Positions 5,501-36,246 of a stretch of DNA of 59,570 bases are shown piece by piece. The position numbers and the translations under genes were made by a program. Under the pieces are notes generated by a model. It saw nothing but the letters and a program-made list of their open reading frames with translations. It had not been told where the DNA came from and made no database searches. The first letter of the stretch is position 1; every line of letters begins with the position of its first letter. This DNA is from Podarcis melisellensis (Eukaryota), in NCBI GenBank assembly GCA_964234715.1, contig OZ174276.1. One strand, written 5' to 3'.

Positions 5501-6905
5501 ATATTACATTCATTTCAATGTCAAGAAAACGTTGCAAAAAAGTATCATTTGCAGACTTAGAACAACAAGAACAATAAGAACAAATGCCAATTGTATTCAC
5601 TTGACTCATTTTCTTTTGATGCACATGCAAACTGCAGGAATTTCCACTTCCTTCTCCATTTCCTCCAAAATTCCTAGTGAGAACTGTGGCATGATAGACA
5701 GACCTGGAGGGCTGCATTTAGTCTCTGGGCCTATTGTTCCCAACATTAGGTTGTTGAACTTTGCTTTGTACTCTTCAGTGGCCATCTGGCCACTTACATA
5801 TGTCTTTTAACATATATTATCCAAAGATTTATAAAAAGAGCTTCCTGCATTGCTGGTTGTTTTTTTTGTTTTGTTTTTTTTTGAAAACAAACAAAAGTTC
5901 CACTTTTTCTGCTGTGCTAAATTTGTTCCTGCCAAAATTGATATTTTATTTTGATTGAACCAGATTAAACTGAATATATAGCCCATGAAAGAAAAGTATC
6001 CTCATGATGGTGTTTGCTTTCATAACTTGTAGCCACCATTCGGTAATGCTGTTAGGGTGTCATAACACAAAAATAAATAAATATAAATCCATATAAAATT
6101 ACATATACAAAAAAAAGAACAAGAGCATAAACTCGGCAGAGTGGCTGAACCATCATTCACCAGTTAGGAGCACCAGGAACTGCCCCTATCCTGACTCAAA
6201 CCTTTGTTCCATCTAGCTCAATGTTTTCTTCACGGAGAGGAAGCCACTCTCCCTGGTTTCAGGCAGGAGTCTCTCCCAACTCTTCCTGGAGATACTGAGG
6301 GATTGAATCCAGGACTTTCTACATACACAAGAGGTGCTCTGTCACTGAGCTATGGTTCTTCCCACAAAGTGCTGGAATGTCTGGAAAAATGAAAATGCCT
6401 TTAAGTAGGCACTGGGATGATAGTTTTAGCACTAGGTAAGCTTCCCTGGAGATGATGTTCCATGTCCTCTGTCCAGTCACCATCACTCACCTAAGTACAG
6501 GTATGGAGGGGGGAATCTGGAGGAGACACTCAGATGGTGAGCATAAAGTACAGGTTGGTTCATATGGTGGAAGGCTTTATAGGTAAGCACCAGCACTTTG
6601 AATTGTCCCCAGAGCAGACCAGTAGCCGGTGTTGCTGTTTGTAATTGACCATTCTAATCGACTCTGACATTTATTGTACACCCACCAATCAATCACCTTT
6701 GGCTTGGAACACATAACTTGTGTCCAGGCTTTCTCTTCGGATGTAAAGGCTACCATGAAAAGAGATGCTTGTTAACTTGCCCTACTTATTCCTGAATTTG
6801 CTGCTTCTGCAAAGTAATAAAATATTTACACCACCCTCAGCGTGAAACTGTGTACCTATTAGTTCGGTCTTCACTGCTTATTAAATACCCAGTAGACATC
6901 AGTAA

Positions 6906-7263
6906 CGCGGGACGCGGGTGGCACTGTGGGTAAAAGCCTCAGCGCCTAGGACTTGCCGATCGAAAGGTCGGCGGTTCGAATCCCCGCGGCGGAGTGCGCT
7001 CCCATCGCTCGGTCCCAGCGCCTGCCAACCTAGCAGTTCGAAAGCACCCTCAGGTGCAAGTAGATAAATAGGGACCGCTTACTAGCGGGAAGGTAAACAG
7101 CGTTCCGTGTGCTGCGCTGGCTCACCAGATGCAGCTTGTCACGCTGGCCACGTGACCCGGAAGTGTCTGCGGACAGTGCTGGCTCCCGGCCTATAGAGTG
7201 AGATGAGCACACAACCCTAGAGTCTGGCAGACTGCCCCGTATGGGCAGGGGTACCTTTACCTT
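6906..7263 (+). mobile_element. Sauria SINE (Squam1/POM-like), full length
   Basis: tRNA-like head GGGACGCGGGTGGCACTGTGG..GGTTCGAATCC, (ACCTTT)n tail, and 13-bp TSD TAGACATCAGTAA (6893-6905 / 7264-7276). Confidence 0.92.
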
Positions 7264-8913
7264 TAGACATCAGTAAACAATGGGGATCAGTTACTGTCAC
7301 CATTAGCCTGCCTGAAATCATACACGTGCCACAAATTCTAGGCAATTCTAGGCAAAGACTGGTAATGTAGTCAGAGACTGTTTAAGCCATTCAGACTTAT
7401 TGTTGTTCCAGTTAAATGACTAAAGCTCAAAGGGCTGCTTTTCTCAATTTTGTGAATGTGGGAGTGGAAGCAGGTTTTGGATATGTGTGTAGATCGAAAT
7501 ATACTCTTGCCCCCCAAAAGGTGTGTGGTCTGTTTACATTATGAAATGCATGCGCCTTTAGATTTGAGCATTCCCAATGTTTGAAACTGAAATGTGATCA
7601 TTTGCCCCAAAAATTGTACATTTGCTGCATTTATGTTCTGCTGAAAGGGCTTGGGTTAAGGAATAATGGAAATTTCTTCTCTCTCCATGAGCAATAAAAG
7701 TCTTTGTGAGTTGCTGGTCCATGCCTCTTAAAACATTGAACTCTACTTTGTTTGCTCATTTAAATGTTCAGCCCACCCATCCTATGGCTCATTCTTGCTT
7801 GTTTGCTTTGCAAAAGAGGCTGGATTCTGCAAGTGGAATCTGTTGTTCCAAATATGAACATTATTCTGCCTGCATTATTCAACCTGGAATTAGTTTTCTT
7901 GATACATAATTTAATTACTACATATGCATTCCTGGTGGCAAAATAGTGCAGCTTATAAGAACCAATAAAATGCAAATGCAATATTATACTGTTAAATATA
8001 CAATTGTGATTTTTCATGTCTTTGCTGGCATATTTTTTGTGATCAGTAACTCTACTGAACTTGTACAGTGCCACATGGGCACCATTGAATGCTAGACTTG
8101 ACCCAGAGTCCTGTAAAAAGAACTGCAGAGAGAGGACATTGATGTATAGCATTGATTTCATCCACATTTTTTCAGCAATGGAGGTATTCCATTGCCTTGC
8201 TTTGATGCAATTTGTAAACACATTATTGAAGGTAACTAAGTGAGAAATGTGCTGCCATGGGCCTTTCAAAATCTGAGTTGAATATACTTTGCAGGAGTGA
8301 TGATCTCAGAGAACAAGTTTATGTATATACCCTCGCAGTCAGCTGTTGTGCAGCAACGTACACAGATGCAAATCGAATTGAAGCTTAGAGAAGATATTTA
8401 TAACCCTGGATCCTTAAATTTAGAGCATATGACTGTAACACAATCTCAGTTTGCTTTTATTGTGTGCACAGTCTGATTCCTTATAACTTTGGAAAGTGGG
8501 TGTATTTGAAGGTGCTAGATTCTGCCCTCAACAATTTTATCGCCAAATTCACTCTTGCTCTGTTCGTGGGCTTCCCTTTGACATCTGGTTGACCGCTGTG
8601 AGAACAGGTAGCTGGACTAGACGGGCCACTGGCTTGATACAGCACATTCTTCTTACGTTATTGTACAAGTTGATGTAAGGAGAGAGCTAATTCTATGGTT
8701 CTTTCCTACCTGATCACCAACTGACCAGGAGTAGCAACATGGGCAAGCGACTCCCACGTGGCTGGTTGTGTTTGTACTGGAGTGAGTTTCAAAAGGGTGC
8801 AGAAGGTGTAGTAACCTATGTGCCCTCTAGCTGTAGTAAAAAAATTGTTAGGCATGGCATAAAATCCATCAAGTGCATGTACTAGAAACAACCTTATTCT
8901 CTATATGTATGGT

Positions 8914-28868: not shown

Positions 28869-29643
28869 GAGAGCCAGTGTGGTGTAGAGGTTAAAGAGCG
28901 GTAGTCTTGTAATCTGGTGAACAGGGTTCGCGTCCCCGCTCCTCCACATGCTACTGCTGGGTGACCTTGGGCTAGTCACACTTCTCTGAAGTCTCTCAGC
29001 CTCACTCACCACACAGAGTATTTGTTGTGGGGGAGGAAGGGAAAGGAGAATGTTAGCCGCTTTGAGACTCCTTTGTTGTTGTTTAGTTGTTTAGTCGTGT
29101 CCGACTCTTCGTGACCCCATGGACCAGAGCATGCCATGCACTCCTGTCTTCCACTGCCTCCCGCAGTTTGGTCAAACTCATGCTGGTAGCTTCAAGAACA
29201 CTGTCCAACCATCTCGTCCTCTGTCGTCCCCTTCTCCTTGTGCCCTCAATCTTTCCCAACATCAGGGTCTTTTTCAGGGAGTCTTCTTTTCTCATGAGGC
29301 AGCCAAAGTATTGGAGCCTCAGCTTCAGGATCTGTCCTTCCAGTGAGCACTTAGGGCTGATGTCCTTAAGAATGAATAGGTTTGATCTTCTTGCAGTCCA
29401 TGGGACTCTCAAGAGTCTCCTCCAGCACCATAATTCAAAAGCATCAATTCTTCGGCAATCTGCCTTCTTTATGGTCCAGCTCTCACTTCCATACATCACT
29501 ACTGGGAGAACCATAGCTTTAACTATACAGACCTTTGTTGGGAAGGTGATGTCTCTACTTTTTAAGATGCTGTCTAGGTTTGTCATTGCTTTTCTCCCAA
29601 GATTGAGACTCCTTAGGGTAGTGATAAAGTGGGATATCAAATT
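28869..29643 (+). mobile_element. Squam3-type SINE split by a BovB insertion
   Basis: 5' part at 28869-29073; the 3' part resumes at 29603 after the duplicated TTGAGACTCCTT. Confidence 0.88.
29074..29602 (-). mobile_element. BovB (RTE) LINE 3' fragment
   Basis: Encodes the BovB C-terminus (RIDAFELWCWRRLLRVPWTARRSN...EDRSAWHALVHGVTKSRTRL); (CAA)n tail; 12-bp TSD TTGAGACTCCTT (29062-29073 / 29603-29614). Confidence 0.95.
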
Positions 29644-30169
29644 TCTCTCTCATAATACTGCAACCCAGTTTCATCTGATGATGCTGAATGTTGGGAGATT
29701 CGGGCCAGAAATATCGCATAGTTCAACTAGGGAATTTGGTCCCACAAGGGTTAGTGATGGATGCTTTCCAAGATGATTAGACAAATCCATACAGGATAGT
29801 GGCTATGTCCTACCTCCAGAGTTGGAGGCAGTATGTCTCTGAGTCCAAAAGTTCATCCGTACCCAGAGTTCTTTTGTCTATCCCTGGGTGATGTTCCTTG
29901 CTACATCATCTATTTTGAATTGATCTTTATTACGGCCATTGGCCCGTCACACAACAGTTTCCCATACCACCATAATGTACTTGAACCTCCAAATTTAAAA
30001 CCGCCAAAACTTACAAAAAAAAAAAAAACAGACAAGAACCAAGCAAAACAAAAACAAAAGACCAACATCATACATTACAACAAATTTGTAGCATAAACAT
30101 CGCCCTCTGCTCATAAATTGATAGAAGACATCAATGGTGATATCACCTAATTACATCCTAAAGCATAGA

Positions 30170-33100
30170 TCATGGTTTAAAGGGATTATCCGAGCCACAC
30201 AGGAGTCCGTTTCTCTTCTTTAGGGATAGGACGCTGATCAAGAATCTGGCAACCATGAGTGATCTTAGGGGGTCATCATCATTTAATAGATATCTCAATT
30301 TGGCTTCAGTCGTATCATCGGCAATTCCCTTAAGATATTGAGCAAGAAACTTGCTCCTGGCCGATAAGTGAAAAGCACAATCAAGAATTATGTGATGCAA
30401 CGATTCTGGTGCCCCACAATTACAATCACATAAGAGCGATATCTGTCCATTGGAGAATCTATTTCTCAGCACGTTCGATGGGAAGGTGTTGAATCTTGCC
30501 TTTACAAAGGCATATCTATGAGCTGAGGAAGTTAAAGAATTCAAATAGTTTGGGAGCCTTAAGAGGGGTAATAAACCAAGATTTAGAGGTGAGCAGGTAC
30601 CATTGCCCAAGATCATTTTCTGCTGCAAGTCCATCTCCTCTAGCTTACAGGTTACTGTTCTTTTAGCTGGAACTATATCCTGCTCTAGTAATTTGGATGG
30701 GGAGATTCCCATTGCCATTATTTTCAGCTGTAATTTTTTTACCCATGGGCTCTGGAAATCATCTCTCCACATACATTGTATCAAGTACAAGTTTGGGAGA
30801 TTGTGCCATAGAGATAACCAGTGACAAAGTATGTGCTTCCACAGAGCATTTTCCAGGGATACAATATTAAGTTCCATGCGTAACGCTGTATTACTTACAC
30901 AGTTGGGCAGTTTCAATATCCCTCTTAAAAACTGATTTTGAATGACCTCCAGGTGAGATAGGTTGGCAAAAGTCCCCCAAATTGAGATGGCATAAGCAAT
31001 CGTCGGGATCACCTTGGCCTTGAAGACTTTCAACGCCGATGGGATATGAAGGGCCCCATCGGTGAAGAAGAATCGCAAGATCGCCAAGGAGATAGATTTG
31101 GCTCTATTTGTAACATAGGCTACATGGGCCTTCCATCTGAGGTTATGTTGTAACCAGACTCCCAAATATTGGAATCTATAGACTTGTTCGATGACTCTCC
31201 CATCAATTCTCCAATTATGGAGTTTCCGGCTCTTTGAGAAAATCAGGATCTTAGATTTTCCATAATTAATTGTAAGGGAATTTGCGTGACAGTATGATCC
31301 AAAAATTTTTAGGGCCCTCCTGAGACCTACTCTAGAAAAAGAAAGAATGACTGCGTCATCCGCATATAGTAACAAGGGGCAGCGATAAAGTGCTAGGCGG
31401 GGTGCATGAATCCTTTCTTGGGCCTCTATCAGGGGAGTCCTCATGTCACTTATGAACAAATTGAACAGGAGTGGAGCCAATATACAACCCTGTCGGACAC
31501 CTCTGTTAATGGGAATTGAATTCGTGAGATCACCCTCCGGGGTGAATCTCACTCTGGCCGCTGAGTTCTCATGGAGTTTGATTATTAGCCAGAGAAGCCT
31601 TCTGTCGATGCCCCAGCGGGTGAGTTTTTCCCAGAGGATGCTCCTGGGGATACTATCGAATGCTGCCTTCAGGTCAATGAATGCCACACAGAGTTGGCCA
31701 CCTTTTGGGGTGGAATATTTCCAGGCAAGATGCTGTAAAATTAGAATATGATTAATTGTTGACTGTTTTGGGCGGAATCCGGCTTGTTCGGGCCCAATTA
31801 ATTTTTTCTCTTCGGCCCATTGGATTAGTCTGTTCAACAGGGAGCGGGCATACAGTTTCCCCACTATTGAGAGCAGGCTGATGTTCCTGTAGTTCCCCGG
31901 GTCATCTGGTGAGCCCTTTTTGTGGATTGGAACGATAACAGCGTCCTTCCATACTTCCGGAATCATTCCAGAGTTGTTAACTGCATCGAAGATGTTCGCC
32001 AGGACCTTGGCCCACCAGTCTGCGTGGTATTTTATAGCTTCTGCTGGGATCAGGTCTGGCCCAGGCGCTTTCCCTGTTTTAAGGTTGACGATCAGGTCAT
32101 GGATGTCTTCCGGATCGGTAGGGGGCCAGAGGGGAAGCTGATCTTGAAATTCGTCTCTTGTGTTGACGATACAGTCAGTTGTGGCAAAGTAATTTTTTAA
32201 ATAAGATTCCCAAACTGGGGCGGGAATAATAGTTAAAGGGTATCTTTTAGTTCTTTTATTTACCAGGAGCCAAAATTGTCTGGTGTTCCGTGATGATGAG
32301 GCTTCTATAATTGCCCGCCATTGATTCGCTTGCCATTCCAGTCTGGCACCCTTTTGAATTTGCTTGTAGGCCGATTTTGCTTGGAAATATTCTTTTGGCA
32401 AGACCGTTGCCCCAGAGGCTTTATACTCTTTGTAGATGTTACCAAGAAGTTGTCTAGCCTGTTTACAAGCACTGTTGAACCACAATGCACCTGTCTTCCT
32501 TTGTGTTCGATTTATTATATGCATCGGGACAGAGAAAAAAGACGTTAGATCTTCCGACAGATTCGAGAATAGTCTTAGGGTTTGGTCGTAATCATGATAA
32601 TCCTCAATTAATCCTGAATATGCTTGTTTTAGTCCTTGTTGTAAATATGCTGAGAATTTTTGAGCATGAAGTTCGGACCATTTTACACTTTTGACTTGCA
32701 GTACTGGGTTCGTAACCAAATGTGTTGGATGTCTGTCTCCATCTGGGGTCCAGTCTATAGTCATTGTGGCGACCAACGGTAGGTGGTCGCTCAGTTGAAT
32801 ATTTTCAACTTTAAAATGGGAAAATTTGGGGAATATATCATGAGATACCAGCATATAATCCAGGACACTGTTTGCAGAGGGGCTTATGTATGTGAACTCA
32901 CCCGGTATGTCAGGTGGGCAGTTCCCGTTTAGAATCACTAAGTTTAGACGTAGTACCAATTGGTAAAGAAGGGTTCCTGCTTCATTTACCCTTCCGTCTT
33001 TGGAGAGTCTTTGATTGTGGAGGGAGAGGTCATTAATGAATTCAGGGGTTATCCACCATTTGGCTTTGGTTAAGGACTCCCAGTTTGTTGCAATGCGAGC

Positions 33101-33565
33101 ATTGAAATCCCCTGCTATAACATTGGGTATATTGGGGTGTTTGGAGTGACAAAGAATAAGATGTTCCTCCAGGATTCCCCATTTATTGTATAAGTCAGCA
33201 ATGTTGCCTCCAGGAGGAAGATAAACATTTGTTATAGCAAGTTCGAAGTTTTTCCCCGTAATCAGGGCTGTAATTGCAAGGGTGGAAGCATTTACAAGCG
33301 TGAGTTTTGCCCGTATTTTCAAGGAAATTGCTATGACTAATCCTCCACTAGGCCGGCCTCCTTTAGTGGACGGGCATGCTGGTAATGATATAGCATCAAA
33401 CCCATTAATATTTACTCTCCCCTCTTCCCATGTTTCCTGCAGGAGAATTACTTGGTGTGAGTTTATTAGTTTTACAAAGTCTGGGTCGAATTTTTTCCCC
33501 TTCCAACCTGCTATGTTCCAGCTTAAAAGGGAGAACGGGGGAGAGTTTGGCTGAGGTTTGGGTAG
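30170..33565 (-). CDS. LINE ORF2: APE endonuclease, reverse transcriptase and C-terminal CCHC motif (1131 codons stop-to-stop, no initiator AUG)
   Basis: The frame is open from the codon right after the ORF1 TGA (LPKPQPNSPPFSLLSWNIAGWKGKK...ILLQETW), 81 codons upstream of the TTG used by the ORF track. EN motifs: WNI, QETW, VYLPP, GDFNAR, LDY, SDHLP. RT motifs: KAPGPD, NYRNISLL, QAGFR, FIDLKAAFDS, GVRQGC, YADD, YLG. Confidence 0.95.
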   Translation of the reverse strand, partial: LPKPQPNSPPFSLLSWNIAGWKGKKFDPDFVKLINSHQVILLQETWEEGRVNINGFDAISLPACPSTKGGRPSGGLVIAISLKIRAKLTLVNASTLAITALITGKNFELAITNVYLPPGGNIADLYNKWGILEEHLILCHSKHPNIPNVIAGDFNARIATNWESLTKAKWWITPEFINDLSLHNQRLSKDGRVNEAGTLLYQLVLRLNLVILNGNCPPDIPGEFTYISPSANSVLDYMLVSHDIFPKFSHFKVENIQLSDHLPLVATMTIDWTPDGDRHPTHLVTNPVLQVKSVKWSELHAQKFSAYLQQGLKQAYSGLIEDYHDYDQTLRLFSNLSEDLTSFFSVPMHIINRTQRKTGALWFNSACKQARQLLGNIYKEYKASGATVLPKEYFQAKSAYKQIQKGARLEWQANQWRAIIEASSSRNTRQFWLLVNKRTKRYPLTIIPAPVWESYLKNYFATTDCIVNTRDEFQDQLPLWPPTDPEDIHDLIVNLKTGKAPGPDLIPAEAIKYHADWWAKVLANIFDAVNNSGMIPEVWKDAVIVPIHKKGSPDDPGNYRNISLLSIVGKLYARSLLNRLIQWAEEKKLIGPEQAGFRPKQSTINHILILQHLAWKYSTPKGGQLCVAFIDLKAAFDSIPRSILWEKLTRWGIDRRLLWLIIKLHENSAARVRFTPEGDLTNSIPINRGVRQGCILAPLLFNLFISDMRTPLIEAQERIHAPRLALYRCPLLLYADDAVILSFSRVGLRRALKIFGSYCHANSLTINYGKSKILIFSKSRKLHNWRIDGRVIEQVYRFQYLGVWLQHNLRWKAHVAYVTNRAKSISLAILRFFFTDGALHIPSALKVFKAKVIPTIAYAISIWGTFANLSHLEVIQNQFLRGILKLPNCVSNTALRMELNIVSLENALWKHILCHWLSLWHNLPNLYLIQCMWRDDFQSPWVKKLQLKIMAMGISPSKLLEQDIVPAKRTVTCKLEEMDLQQKMILGNGTCSPLNLGLLPLLRLPNYLNSLTSSAHRYAFVKARFNTFPSNVLRNRFSNGQISLLCDCNCGAPESLHHIILDCAFHLSARSKFLAQYLKGIADDTTEAKLRYLLNDDDPLRSLMVARFLISVLSLKKRNGLLCGSDNPFKP

Positions 33566-35311
33566 TCACAATGGAGAAGGGGGGAACGCTGATCTTGGTG
33601 GGTTGTCAAATTTAAAGAAGTCAGTAATTTTCCTTTGACTAATGGTAGATGACTTCTCTCCTTTTGGCGCAGGTGTGCCTCTTGAGCTATTGTGAATATA
33701 GATAATATTTGATGTTTTTAGCTGTCGGGCCCAACTAGGCCCTGAAGAGGCTCCTGCCAAGTCCGCTGGAGCTGTCCTCTTTGGGGATCTAACCGATCCA
33801 TTTGTGATCATTTGGTTTATATGTCCTGCTGGGTCTTCAGTCCACTCTGTGGTGACTCGCGGCACTGTGGTGTCTTCCTCACATGATTGTTGGATTTTTG
33901 GTGGAGAAGCCTTACTTGAGGTGGCCACTACCGTCTCAGGACGTGGATGGTCTTCGATGTATGTTGATTCCAAGTCCGGCATGGAGGGGTGAAGGGACAA
34001 CGATTTATCCAGGGGGGTGTTATCCTGAGTTCCATTCTTGGATCGGTTAATCACAGAGGGAACAGATAAGTCTATTAAAAGCAGGGATGAGTTACCAGCG
34101 TGAAGGGGAGGAGAAGAGTCTGCCTCCAGCAGTGGGACCTTCCCATCTACTGCAGAGGGCACCTTATATGCTGGGTATTGGGGAATTGTTGTTTCCATCT
34201 CCATGGGGCATGGCACCGCTAAATTAGAGTGGGTATCGTTCGTAGGAACTCCGTTGCAGGCGATCCTTAGGAGCTGAAGTTTAAGTAAATCCAGCCTATT
34301 TATAATATCTTGTTGTTCCATCGCTGGTAACTCTCCAAAGGAGGCGATGAGCTCTCTTTCCTCCTGGGGTGTCAAAGAGTTACTGGCACACTCGTAGTGT
34401 TTGGTTGTAGGAGTGGAGTTACTATGAGACTGGCCCAGACATGGAGTGTACAGCTCAGCCCTCTTTTGTGGTTCAGGGCGGGAGGGTTGTACCGTCTCCT
34501 TGGTTAATCCCTCTGATAGGAGGGGTCTAATTTTGGAATCCATGAAAACTCTCGTTGGAAAAATACCAAGATTATTCAAAAAAACTTTTTGCTTAATAAT
34601 AAGAGAGGGGATTTTTGCAGAGTAGAAAGCCAGCATCACTCTCTGATATCTGTTCTGGCTAACTAAGGGAAGCACAGCACAAAGATCTATTTGTGATGCC
34701 TCGAGTTTTAGAAGCCATCTGAGGTGCTCTTTAGTCCCATGTAGCGTTGTCCAACTTAGGTCCCTTCCCCGGAAGGTTAGGGAAATCTTCCTTGGATGTA
34801 GAATCAGGGATTGGCGATTCAGTGCGGGGTTGAGATTGTATTTGCAGTTCTTCATACAATCGGTGTTTGGTGGAGCTTTCTGCCGGCGCAATGGAACATC
34901 TACTGCCCCCTCTTGGGCTGTCTGTGCCGGCTGGTGATCCAGTTTTTGCTGAAGACTATGCAGCTGAGAGGATAGGCCATCAATTTTCTTAAATATACAG
35001 TTTAGAGTTCTAATTATTAGATGGAGTTGCTCGCATCCTGTGCAGTCCGATTCGGCTACCAATTCCTCCTTTGGATAGGGACCATCCCCATTTGTGTTAC
35101 CATTAGCGTTTCCAATTTGTAACGTCTCAGGGGCCTCATCTTCTGATGTTGTTTCAAGGGCAGTTAGAGGATCGAAACGTTTTTGAGTTGCTATTGAGTA
35201 GGTACATTCTTTGGGGCCTCTCCCTCCTTTAGGTGAACCCTTCCTTAATTGCTTAGGCCTTGGAGAGGATAATGCCTCGTCAGAGTCTCTTGGACGTTTT
35301 CCATGGCCCAT
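33566..35311 (-). CDS. LINE ORF1 protein (581 aa): basic N-terminus, coiled coil, central putative RRM-like domain, disordered tail with PIP box
   Basis: Uninterrupted ATG..TGA ORF upstream of the EN-RT. Contains a KRFDPL motif, a heptad-like stretch LHLIIRTLNCIFKKIDGLSSQLHSLQQKL, and C-terminal QRKITDFF. Domain calls are inference. Confidence 0.85.
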   Translation of the reverse strand: MGHGKRPRDSDEALSSPRPKQLRKGSPKGGRGPKECTYSIATQKRFDPLTALETTSEDEAPETLQIGNANGNTNGDGPYPKEELVAESDCTGCEQLHLIIRTLNCIFKKIDGLSSQLHSLQQKLDHQPAQTAQEGAVDVPLRRQKAPPNTDCMKNCKYNLNPALNRQSLILHPRKISLTFRGRDLSWTTLHGTKEHLRWLLKLEASQIDLCAVLPLVSQNRYQRVMLAFYSAKIPSLIIKQKVFLNNLGIFPTRVFMDSKIRPLLSEGLTKETVQPSRPEPQKRAELYTPCLGQSHSNSTPTTKHYECASNSLTPQEERELIASFGELPAMEQQDIINRLDLLKLQLLRIACNGVPTNDTHSNLAVPCPMEMETTIPQYPAYKVPSAVDGKVPLLEADSSPPLHAGNSSLLLIDLSVPSVINRSKNGTQDNTPLDKSLSLHPSMPDLESTYIEDHPRPETVVATSSKASPPKIQQSCEEDTTVPRVTTEWTEDPAGHINQMITNGSVRSPKRTAPADLAGASSGPSWARQLKTSNIIYIHNSSRGTPAPKGEKSSTISQRKITDFFKFDNPPRSAFPPSPL

Positions 35312-35825
35312 AAATCAATTTTGCAGGAGCTGGGGAGCTCCTTAAATCCTTTAGTCTTCCTCACAAGAATACTACCACTTCCAGGAGAGTGGTGCCATAA
35401 AATTACTCACAGTAAGGCAGTCAGTTCAAGCCTCTTCCTTCCCCTTTTCCTTGTTCCTAGGATTTTTGAGACAGCTCGGTTCCAGCAGTCGGGCAAAATT
35501 CACTTCGTAGTGTGCAATAAACTAAAAGCTAAAGGAAAGAGCTGGTCGACAGGGCAGAGGATTTATGCCCAGGAGAACCTTTCACTTATCTCTTCCAGTT
35601 AGGGAGGCGGCGGCAGCCGTGGCGGCAAGTCCGGGCGTCGGAGCCACCCAGATAAAAAGAAAACAAAGATAAAACAAGTAGCGGGATACTAAAAGATACT
35701 AAAAGACAGCCAGCACAGCCAGCAGATCATTAAAACTCACGGATAAAAACAAGGGAGGATAAAAACCGCATAAAACCACTTAAAACTTTGATAAGAGTAA
35801 GCGAAATTACTCGGAGACTACCTTC

Positions 35826-35838
35826 GCCGCCATGTTGG
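35826..35838 (-). promoter_or_regulatory. YY1-type motif (CCAACATGGCGGC) at +11..+23 of the LINE 5'UTR; probable internal Pol II promoter
   Basis: Matches the YY1 consensus CAANATGGCGGC. Position relative to the TSD-defined 5' end parallels the YY1 site of mammalian L1. A CpG-rich stretch lies at about 35600-35645. Confidence 0.6.
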
Positions 35839-36246
35839 ATCCTCCTTCCTACATCATCTATTTTTAAAAAATATGTGCTCAACAAGGATTGGAGCCAAGG
35901 AGGACATCCTCATTATCTGTGGTGGGGAAAGGAATTGCCTGTGACTAATATAATTCTTACAGATGGAGTTTCTGCATCAGCTCCACAATCTCCTAGTGAA
36001 CACTGAGGCATGGGCAGAAAATCAGATTAATTATAAGGAAATGAATGGGTGGAATTCACTTTTCCACGAAAGACAGAAGATAAACAGTTGGAAGAACAGG
36101 ATGTAGAGAGGAAAAGAACTGTGCTGTGACAGTGGAAAAGGCTGGTTCACTCTGTTGACAACAGGTGTCAACTGGGTCTCTTGTGGTGGTACTGATTGAT
36201 GCCTGCCGAGACTCTCTGGCAGCTGTGCCATGTCTCATTAGCTCTG

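Follow-up and report, generated by a model that had tools for sequence, protein, structure and literature searches.

One of the described systems closest to the element reported here is human L1, a long interspersed element (LINE). The protein of its second open reading frame (ORF), ORF2p, is a non-long-terminal-repeat retrotransposon protein proposed to use PCNA in insertion, through a PCNA-interacting protein (PIP) box at residues 407-415 (PMC5371812, PMC10830420). Human L1 requires PCNA as a host factor, and the site and mode of PCNA binding are disputed (PMC10830420, PMC7617806): the PIP helix packs on the palm and fingers of ORF2p (PMC10830420), and according to a 2025 study PCNA sits elsewhere on ORF2p, at a site in the wrist called 'PUB' (PMC7617806). 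Among DNA transposons, a canonical PIP box is kept among relatives of the pogo/Tigger transposases, and pogo binds PCNA in two-hybrid assays, with functional relevance still unclear (PMC5371812). Bacterial transposases, namely Tn7 TnsE and those of insertion sequence (IS) families, carry motifs that bind the beta clamp (PMC5371812). Here we describe a LINE of the squamate Podarcis melisellensis whose first protein, ORF1p, ends in a canonical PIP box. The element lies within a 59,570-nucleotide stretch of contig OZ174276.1 (assembly GCA_964234715.1), which we call the window. In human L1 the motif lies in ORF2p, between the endonuclease (EN) and the reverse transcriptase (RT), whereas here it is a terminal peptide of ORF1p, predicted to be exposed, and ORF2 has none. 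We found no description of a PIP box in a LINE ORF1p in the full-text literature, a result that is only suggestive since subscription journals lie largely outside that coverage. The initial annotation of this locus had drawn on human L1 as a precedent. PCNA use by ORF2p has indeed been proposed, but the precedent is weaker than stated there, with the PIP helix packed (PMC10830420) and another site proposed (PMC7617806).

33614..33637, minus strand: C-terminal PIP box QRKITDFF, ORF1 residues 559-566 (minus-strand translation).
33569..33613, minus strand: 15-residue spacer from the PIP box to the stop, KFDNPPRSAFPPSPL, its length fixed in relatives and its sequence not conserved.
33569..35311, minus strand: ORF1, 581 residues (minus-strand translation).
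33566..33568, minus strand: single in-frame TGA between ORF1 and the EN/RT frame, followed by the codon CTA.
30170..33565, minus strand: EN/RT frame (ORF2), with no ATG of its own at its start.

The motif stands exactly where the initial annotation had put it, at the C-terminus of ORF1 and 15 residues before the stop, and it fits the canonical pattern with Q1, the aliphatic I4 and the aromatic pair F7-F8. Canonical high-affinity PIP boxes include QTSMTDFY of p21 and QRRVTDFF of Cdt1. The window's motif shares with these cellular clients of PCNA the pattern Q-x-x-[ILM]-x-x-[FY]-[FY], the TD at positions 5-6 and the pairing of a basic position 3 with an acidic position 6; like theirs, it lies in a disordered terminus, here a predicted one. 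Unlike them, its bearer is the first protein of a LINE rather than a replication or repair factor, and no basic residue of the degron type follows the box. A peptide-library study has linked nanomolar PCNA affinity to Q1, I4 and F7F8 together with basic 3 and acidic 6, the tightest designed box being QTRITEYF at 1.1 nM (PMC8191301). In QRKITDFF, K3 and D6 flank position 4 as they do in boxes of nanomolar affinity. The likeness to high-affinity boxes claimed earlier extends to every sequence feature of a canonical box. The strict pattern Q-x-x-[ILMV]-x-x-[FY]-[FY] appeared anywhere in 0.94% of 100,000 shuffles of ORF1, and a match with TD at positions 5-6 in only 0.002% (2 in 100,000). The 35-residue tail found no match among PDB chains, a result of little weight because the query is too short for phmmer.

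A word search with ORF1 returned seven relatives, proteins of Podarcis muralis and P. lilfordi among them. Every one that reaches the C-terminus carries Q-[RS]-K-I-T-D-F-F, at only 37-40% identity to ORF1 of the window. Against the DNA of three related loci (L001, L002 and L003), the motif codons of the window differ by synonymous changes (ATT/ATA for Ile, ACT/ACG for Thr, TTC/TTT for Phe), and the sole replacement, AGG/AGT (Arg/Ser), falls at the unconstrained position 2. Constraint therefore acts at the protein level. The window's clade comprises five diverged lineages, all motif-bearing and at 31-40% overall identity to the window: the window with P0001 and P0002; P0003, P0004 and P0006; P0008 of Zootoca; P0009 and P0102; and P0013. 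When the five were aligned, Q-x-K-I-T-D-F-[F/L] was the only invariant block in the last 90-120 residues, with TD at positions 5-6 invariant throughout the clade, while the tail around the motif has diverged beyond alignment and varies in length upstream. The strict pattern also occurs in P0001-P0004, P0006, P0009, P0013 and P0047; P0008 has L at position 8. Conservation in otherwise divergent ORF1 tails, which the initial annotation had proposed as the first check of its reading, is thus what we find: the motif is kept while its flanks diverge.

Distances around the stop are fixed as well. Exactly 15 residues separate the motif from the stop in the window, P0001/P0002, P0003/P0004/P0006, P0008, P0009/P0102, P0013 and P0047, with little nucleotide conservation across 33569..33613 in the DNA alignment. 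From the stop to [SC]WNIAGW there are 14 residues in the four junction-spanning loci (the window, at 33524-33565 on the minus strand, L001, L002 and L004). Both stretches are fixed in length without being conserved in sequence, and the region immediately ahead of the motif is rich in indels. Three reasons for the fixed length are conceivable: a geometry that the linker of a fusion protein must have, a flank that touches PCNA, or a constraint acting around the stop. In P0001 and P0002 the alignment places a 31-residue insertion directly upstream of the motif. Several contigs from the DNA read set that best holds the sequence end exactly at the motif's upstream edge (33638, 33640), and one skips 33455-33614, up to the motif's last base. 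These breaks fit subfamilies with indels at the motif borders and the motif itself kept, as with the insertion in P0001 and P0002. Among the best-supported rows listed for these contigs, there are no variants inside the motif.

ORF1 has no Pfam family and only seven word-search matches, and the claim hinges on diverged relatives; we therefore ran a profile search, which gathered 96 proteins at E up to 0.001, several of them fragments or gene-model chimeras. All of the 96 that carry a source name come from squamates (Zootoca, Podarcis, Gekko, Sphaerodactylus and Pogona). Most of the distant relatives lack the C-terminal motif. In its place they carry, close to residue 20 and directly behind a KRxR cluster, a PIP box of the pattern K-Q-[STL]-K-[ILM]-x-D-[FY]-[F..] (for example QTKLDDFF, QSKIGDFF, QSKLEDFF, QRRIDNFF, QTKISEFF and QLRLDSFF). 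We tallied 27 such N-terminal modules, of which 3 are mis-registered. Position 3 is K or R in 26/27, position 4 is I, L or M in 24/27, position 6 is D in 16/27 and position 7 is F or Y in 20/27; position 8 is F or Y in 16/27 and L, V or I in 9/27. TD is absent from all of them. Across 102 family proteins, which are related and whose match counts are thus not independent events, strict PIP matches numbered 31 against 1.0 expected from shuffles; 17 of them lie near the N-terminus, where shuffles predict 0.13, and 9 near the C-terminus, where they predict 0.07. A third short motif, N-R-F-x-P-L, lies 15-25 residues after the N-terminal PIP site in nearly all family members; its version in the window is KRFDPL, at approximately 35165-35185 on the minus strand.

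35288..35299, minus strand: basic cluster KRPR, residues 5-8, kept across the ORF1 superfamily (columns M-G-x-x-K-R-x-R-D).
35228..35251, minus strand: decayed N-terminal PIP remnant QLRKGSPK, residues 21-28, aligned with K-Q-x-K-[IL]-x-D-F-F of distant relatives.
33809..33838, minus strand: conserved EDPAGHINQM block, residues 492-501 (alignment).

In the proteins complete at both ends, the box sits at one end or the other, never at both. In the window's clade the N-terminal module can still be aligned to that of distant relatives (M-G-x-G-K-R-x-R-D ... P-x-x-K-Q ...), and the hydrophobic residues of its PIP site have been lost differently in each sublineage, giving QLRKGSPK in the window, QPKTDPPV in P0003, QSKLESPS in P0009 and QPKIDSFS in P0012. 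Among the 19 proteins complete at both ends, seven have only the C-terminal box (the window, P0001, P0002, P0003, P0008, P0009 and P0102) and twelve only the N-terminal one (8 canonical and 4 relaxed), with none carrying both and none carrying neither. Tentatively, one sublineage of the window's clade, and only one, is without the C-terminal motif. Its representative, L008 (positions 5974-7760 of that locus, from GCA_947686815.1), has a 30-residue tail after the EDPAGHINQ block with no C-terminal box, and keeps a near-canonical N-terminal box, QSKIDSFL. This copy adjoins the Cluap1 gene and has an in-frame stop before SWNVAGW. At the locus of P0012 (L009) we found neither an endonuclease start nor a C-terminal motif; the protein is a spliced, chimeric gene model spread over 14 kb and says nothing about the tail.

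We built a maximum-likelihood tree from 77 rows of the core region. In it the C-terminal-box clade forms a well-supported group of 13 rows, nested among N-terminal-box lineages, which occupy either half of the tree. Provided that the root falls outside this clade, the N-terminal position is thus the older one. In the N-terminal-PIP relatives, ORF1 closes with N-G-[CS]-[IV]-x-x-D-x-x-G-x-L-x-x-I, some five residues short of the TGA. This terminal motif is seen at L005:1800-1898, where D-E-E-G-E-L-N-N-I stands five residues before the TGA, and in the tails of P0015, P0022-P0025, P0033, P0036, P0041, P0064, P0069, P0085 and others. By eye, through a match of D-x-x-G-x-[IL]-[ND]-x-[IM], EDPAGHINQM appears to be its counterpart in the window's clade, so that residues 502-581 (80 residues) look like a clade-specific extension bearing the new box. 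As far as the alignments speak, the ORF1 superfamily keeps one PIP motif per protein, the N-terminal copy being ancestral and the C-terminal copy new in the window's clade.

ORF2 offers no substitute for either box. Even with a relaxed pattern, we found no PIP-like motif in the ORF2 frames of the window, L002, L004 and L005. The L004 and L005 frames are colinear with that of the window over about 1100 residues, at 54% and 34% identity, and the three elements are therefore of one lineage. L005 has the N-terminal box together with the same single in-frame TGA, its motif lying more than 400 residues from the window-type position; closeness of the box to the endonuclease is hence not a conserved feature. 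The initial annotation had held that in a readthrough fusion the box would sit immediately N-terminal to the endonuclease. That arrangement does not extend to the family, most of whose members share the single in-frame TGA layout but carry the box more than 400 residues away, at the N-terminus. Its wider proposal that this LINE places the PCNA tether in ORF1 gains strength from the N-terminal boxes of distant relatives and from the absence of a PIP-like motif in ORF2, which together point to a tether kept in ORF1.

34937..35038, minus strand: long predicted helix, residues 92-125 (AlphaFold2).
34532..34819, minus strand: RRM-like alpha/beta domain (RRM, RNA-recognition motif), residues about 165-260, predicted by AlphaFold2 as beta-alpha-beta-beta-alpha-beta with confidence (pLDDT) >90.

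PIP boxes of known PCNA clients lie in disordered regions. We modeled ORF1 of the window in AlphaFold2 with a 102-sequence alignment. Besides the helix and the domain listed above, the model has residues 1-90 disordered, two helices at 316-353, and residues 356-581 disordered and without secondary structure, at pLDDT <50 nearly throughout. The C-terminal box is thus predicted to sit in an exposed, disordered tail, and the earlier description of that tail as low-complexity is a fair one. The helix at 92-125 is a candidate coiled coil that may mediate oligomerisation. In Foldseek the folded domain matched RRMs best (RRM3 of Pes4 and Mip6, and PABPN1), though weakly (E 4e-4, TM about 0.65 on the target). 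No Pfam family was found in ORF1 at E up to 0.1, and the L1 ORF1 profile Transposase_22 was not matched. In its predicted fold, ORF1p may resemble the helix-plus-RRM type of LINE first proteins. A second pattern match in ORF1, QRVMLAFY (residues about 224-231, approximately 34600-34625 on the minus strand), forms a buried strand within the predicted RRM-like domain; we therefore rejected it as a false positive. Four family matches to Q[KR]VMLAFY inside the folded domain are likewise accidental.

29917..35848, minus strand: whole LINE element, 5932 bases, with a perfect 16-base target-site duplication on each side.
35849-35864 and 29901-29916: the two copies of the target-site duplication, 16 bases, perfect.

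The element's ends were mapped, and it has no poly(A) tail. The perfect target-site duplication, the missing poly(A) tail and the intact reading frames indicate a recent insertion, and this motif-bearing copy is probably active. The family has many copies, to judge from the high summed depth of the DNA read contigs. After the TGA the frame stays open for 1131 codons, down to 30170, with the start of an AP-type endonuclease, SWNIAGW at 33523, and then the RT; a Pfam scan of this frame found Exo_endo_phos_2 and RVT_1. ORF1 and ORF2 were searched apart, and the stop was never replaced by a real residue. The layout with one TGA is common to L001, L002, L003, L004 and L005/L006. The TGA, called leaky in the initial annotation, is only putatively so. 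L007 (P0104), which has a TAA stop and ORF2 in the +2 frame, was taken as a decayed copy and left out. Compared with solved RTs, that of the window is about equally distant from L1 ORF2p (3e-31) and R2 (1.5e-23), which does not discriminate its clade. At the ORF2 C-terminus (30170-30330, minus strand) there is a C-x3-C-x7-H-x4-C Cys/His pattern, a spacing reported for mammalian L1 ORF2 (PMC5381506). An open frame of 185 residues at 29083-29640 on the minus strand adjoins the 3' end of the element. Direct comparison found no similarity between this frame and ORF2 of the window. From its RRGRQRTRW signature, it looks like the C-terminal part of an RTE/BovB-type LINE.

How might the box serve the element? 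With its predicted long helix and RRM-like domain, ORF1p is probably RNA-binding and would bind the element's own RNA, while the KRPR cluster resembles a nuclear localization signal and may direct nuclear import. ORF1p, or an ORF1-EN-RT fusion made by readthrough of the TGA, would then dock through the motif onto DNA-loaded PCNA. The ribonucleoprotein would thereby reach replication forks or repair patches, whose host factors could serve target-primed reverse transcription and help to complete it. As in human L1, the EN-RT polypeptide would carry a box, here upon readthrough and from ORF1p. On the strength of the motif and its conservation, docking of ORF1p on PCNA is in our view probable, and any readthrough fusion would dock likewise. 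More tentatively, and with a little less than even confidence, we propose that this squamate LINE superfamily relies on one exposed, high-affinity PIP box per ORF1p that clamps the RNA particle or the fusion on PCNA whatever its position, and that the box moved from the N- to the C-terminus, after which the old copy decayed in each sublineage on its own. Should ORF1p form trimers, as L1 ORF1p does, there would be one PIP box for each of the three pockets in the PCNA ring.

Several observations weigh against docking on PCNA, or against parts of the proposal built on it. PIP-like peptides can bind other partners too. The nuclear PCNA complex of human L1 described in 2018 by Mita and colleagues reportedly lacked ORF1p, which leaves an ORF1p-PCNA link without direct precedent. 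N-terminal boxes with an aliphatic last residue, about a third of those tallied, may be weak binders, and the excess of strict matches is drawn from related proteins. The exceptional L008 is a single copy decayed by frameshifts. Coverage by the RNA reads of a related species was close to nil (4-6 reads at 85-95% likeness).

The same evidence bears on what else the motif could be. Conserved docking to some partner besides PCNA is unlikely, whether that partner be a further reader of FF-type PIP-like motifs (the Rev1 C-terminal domain or MLH1, for example) or another host factor. Conservation and the either/or distribution between the two termini show a functional motif while leaving the partner unnamed, and PIP-like motifs are known to overlap in specificity. 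Yet the whole of Q-x-x-I-x-x-F-F is kept, Q included, and readers of FF alone need no Q. For Rev1 in particular, P0009 has prolines at +3 and +4 after FF, against the Rev1-interacting rule of four non-proline residues there; for MLH1, the S-[RK]-[FY]-F core is absent.

That the motif is a PIP degron strikes us as very improbable. On that reading CRL4-Cdt2 would ubiquitinate ORF1p once it is bound to PCNA and so cause its destruction, in S phase or following damage, whether the host thereby controls the element or the element limits itself. The attraction of this reading is the TD at positions 5-6, a hallmark common to Cdt1, p21 and Set8 and, as noted above, unvarying in the C-terminal-motif clade. 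A basic residue four positions after the box is, however, required for such a degron (10.1101/468413). At that position the window has N and its relatives S, A, A, I, P and S (seven sequences), never a basic residue, and the N-terminal versions have no TD at all. The motif is therefore very probably not a degron, and the initial annotation, which had noted the missing basic residue in the window and predicted binding without degradation, is borne out across the relatives on the first count; binding without CRL4-Cdt2 targeting is the better reading of the second.

Barely credible is a functionless chance match kept through shared ancestry. Short motifs do arise easily in low-complexity tails, and the relatives do share ancestry; but Q-x-K-I-T-D-F-[F/L] has been kept between flanks that have diverged beyond alignment and vary in length, the codon changes within it are synonymous, distant relatives have another PIP box, placed independently at the opposite end of the protein, and the shuffle expectation is 0.9%, or 2e-5 with TD. 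Next to no weight falls on an RNA signal for readthrough of the TGA 45 nucleotides downstream: a distance to the stop fixed at 15 codons in all members would suit it, but known readthrough stimulators lie downstream of the stop, and we rejected it because third-codon positions vary within the motif and L005, with the same TGA layout, lacks the motif at the C-terminal place.

Docking of ORF1p on PCNA, the reading we prefer, would place this LINE beside other mobile elements with peptides that dock on a sliding clamp. In pogo/Tigger the box belongs to a DNA transposon enzyme, whereas here it belongs to a LINE protein of predicted RNA-binding type and has changed ends in evolution. The likeness to Tn7 TnsE and the IS families is one of clamp docking by mobile elements, pointing to convergent targeting of replication, although there the clamp is bacterial, the motif is another and the systems are those of DNA transposition. 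Among cellular proteins, DNA ligase I and UNG2 carry an N-terminal box beside a basic cluster, much like the N-terminal boxes of the ORF1 relatives. These comparisons suggest that LINEs, DNA transposons and bacterial insertion sequences each came by clamp docking on their own. Within the squamate family, one box at either end of each complete relative is evolutionary evidence of selection on clamp docking in the lineage. Its members carry an unambiguous, canonical box in ORF1p, predicted to be exposed, and none in ORF2. If the superfamily does rely on one box per ORF1p, these elements would offer a cleaner genetic system than human L1, with its disputed PCNA site, in which to study whether replication forks and LINE insertion are physically coupled.

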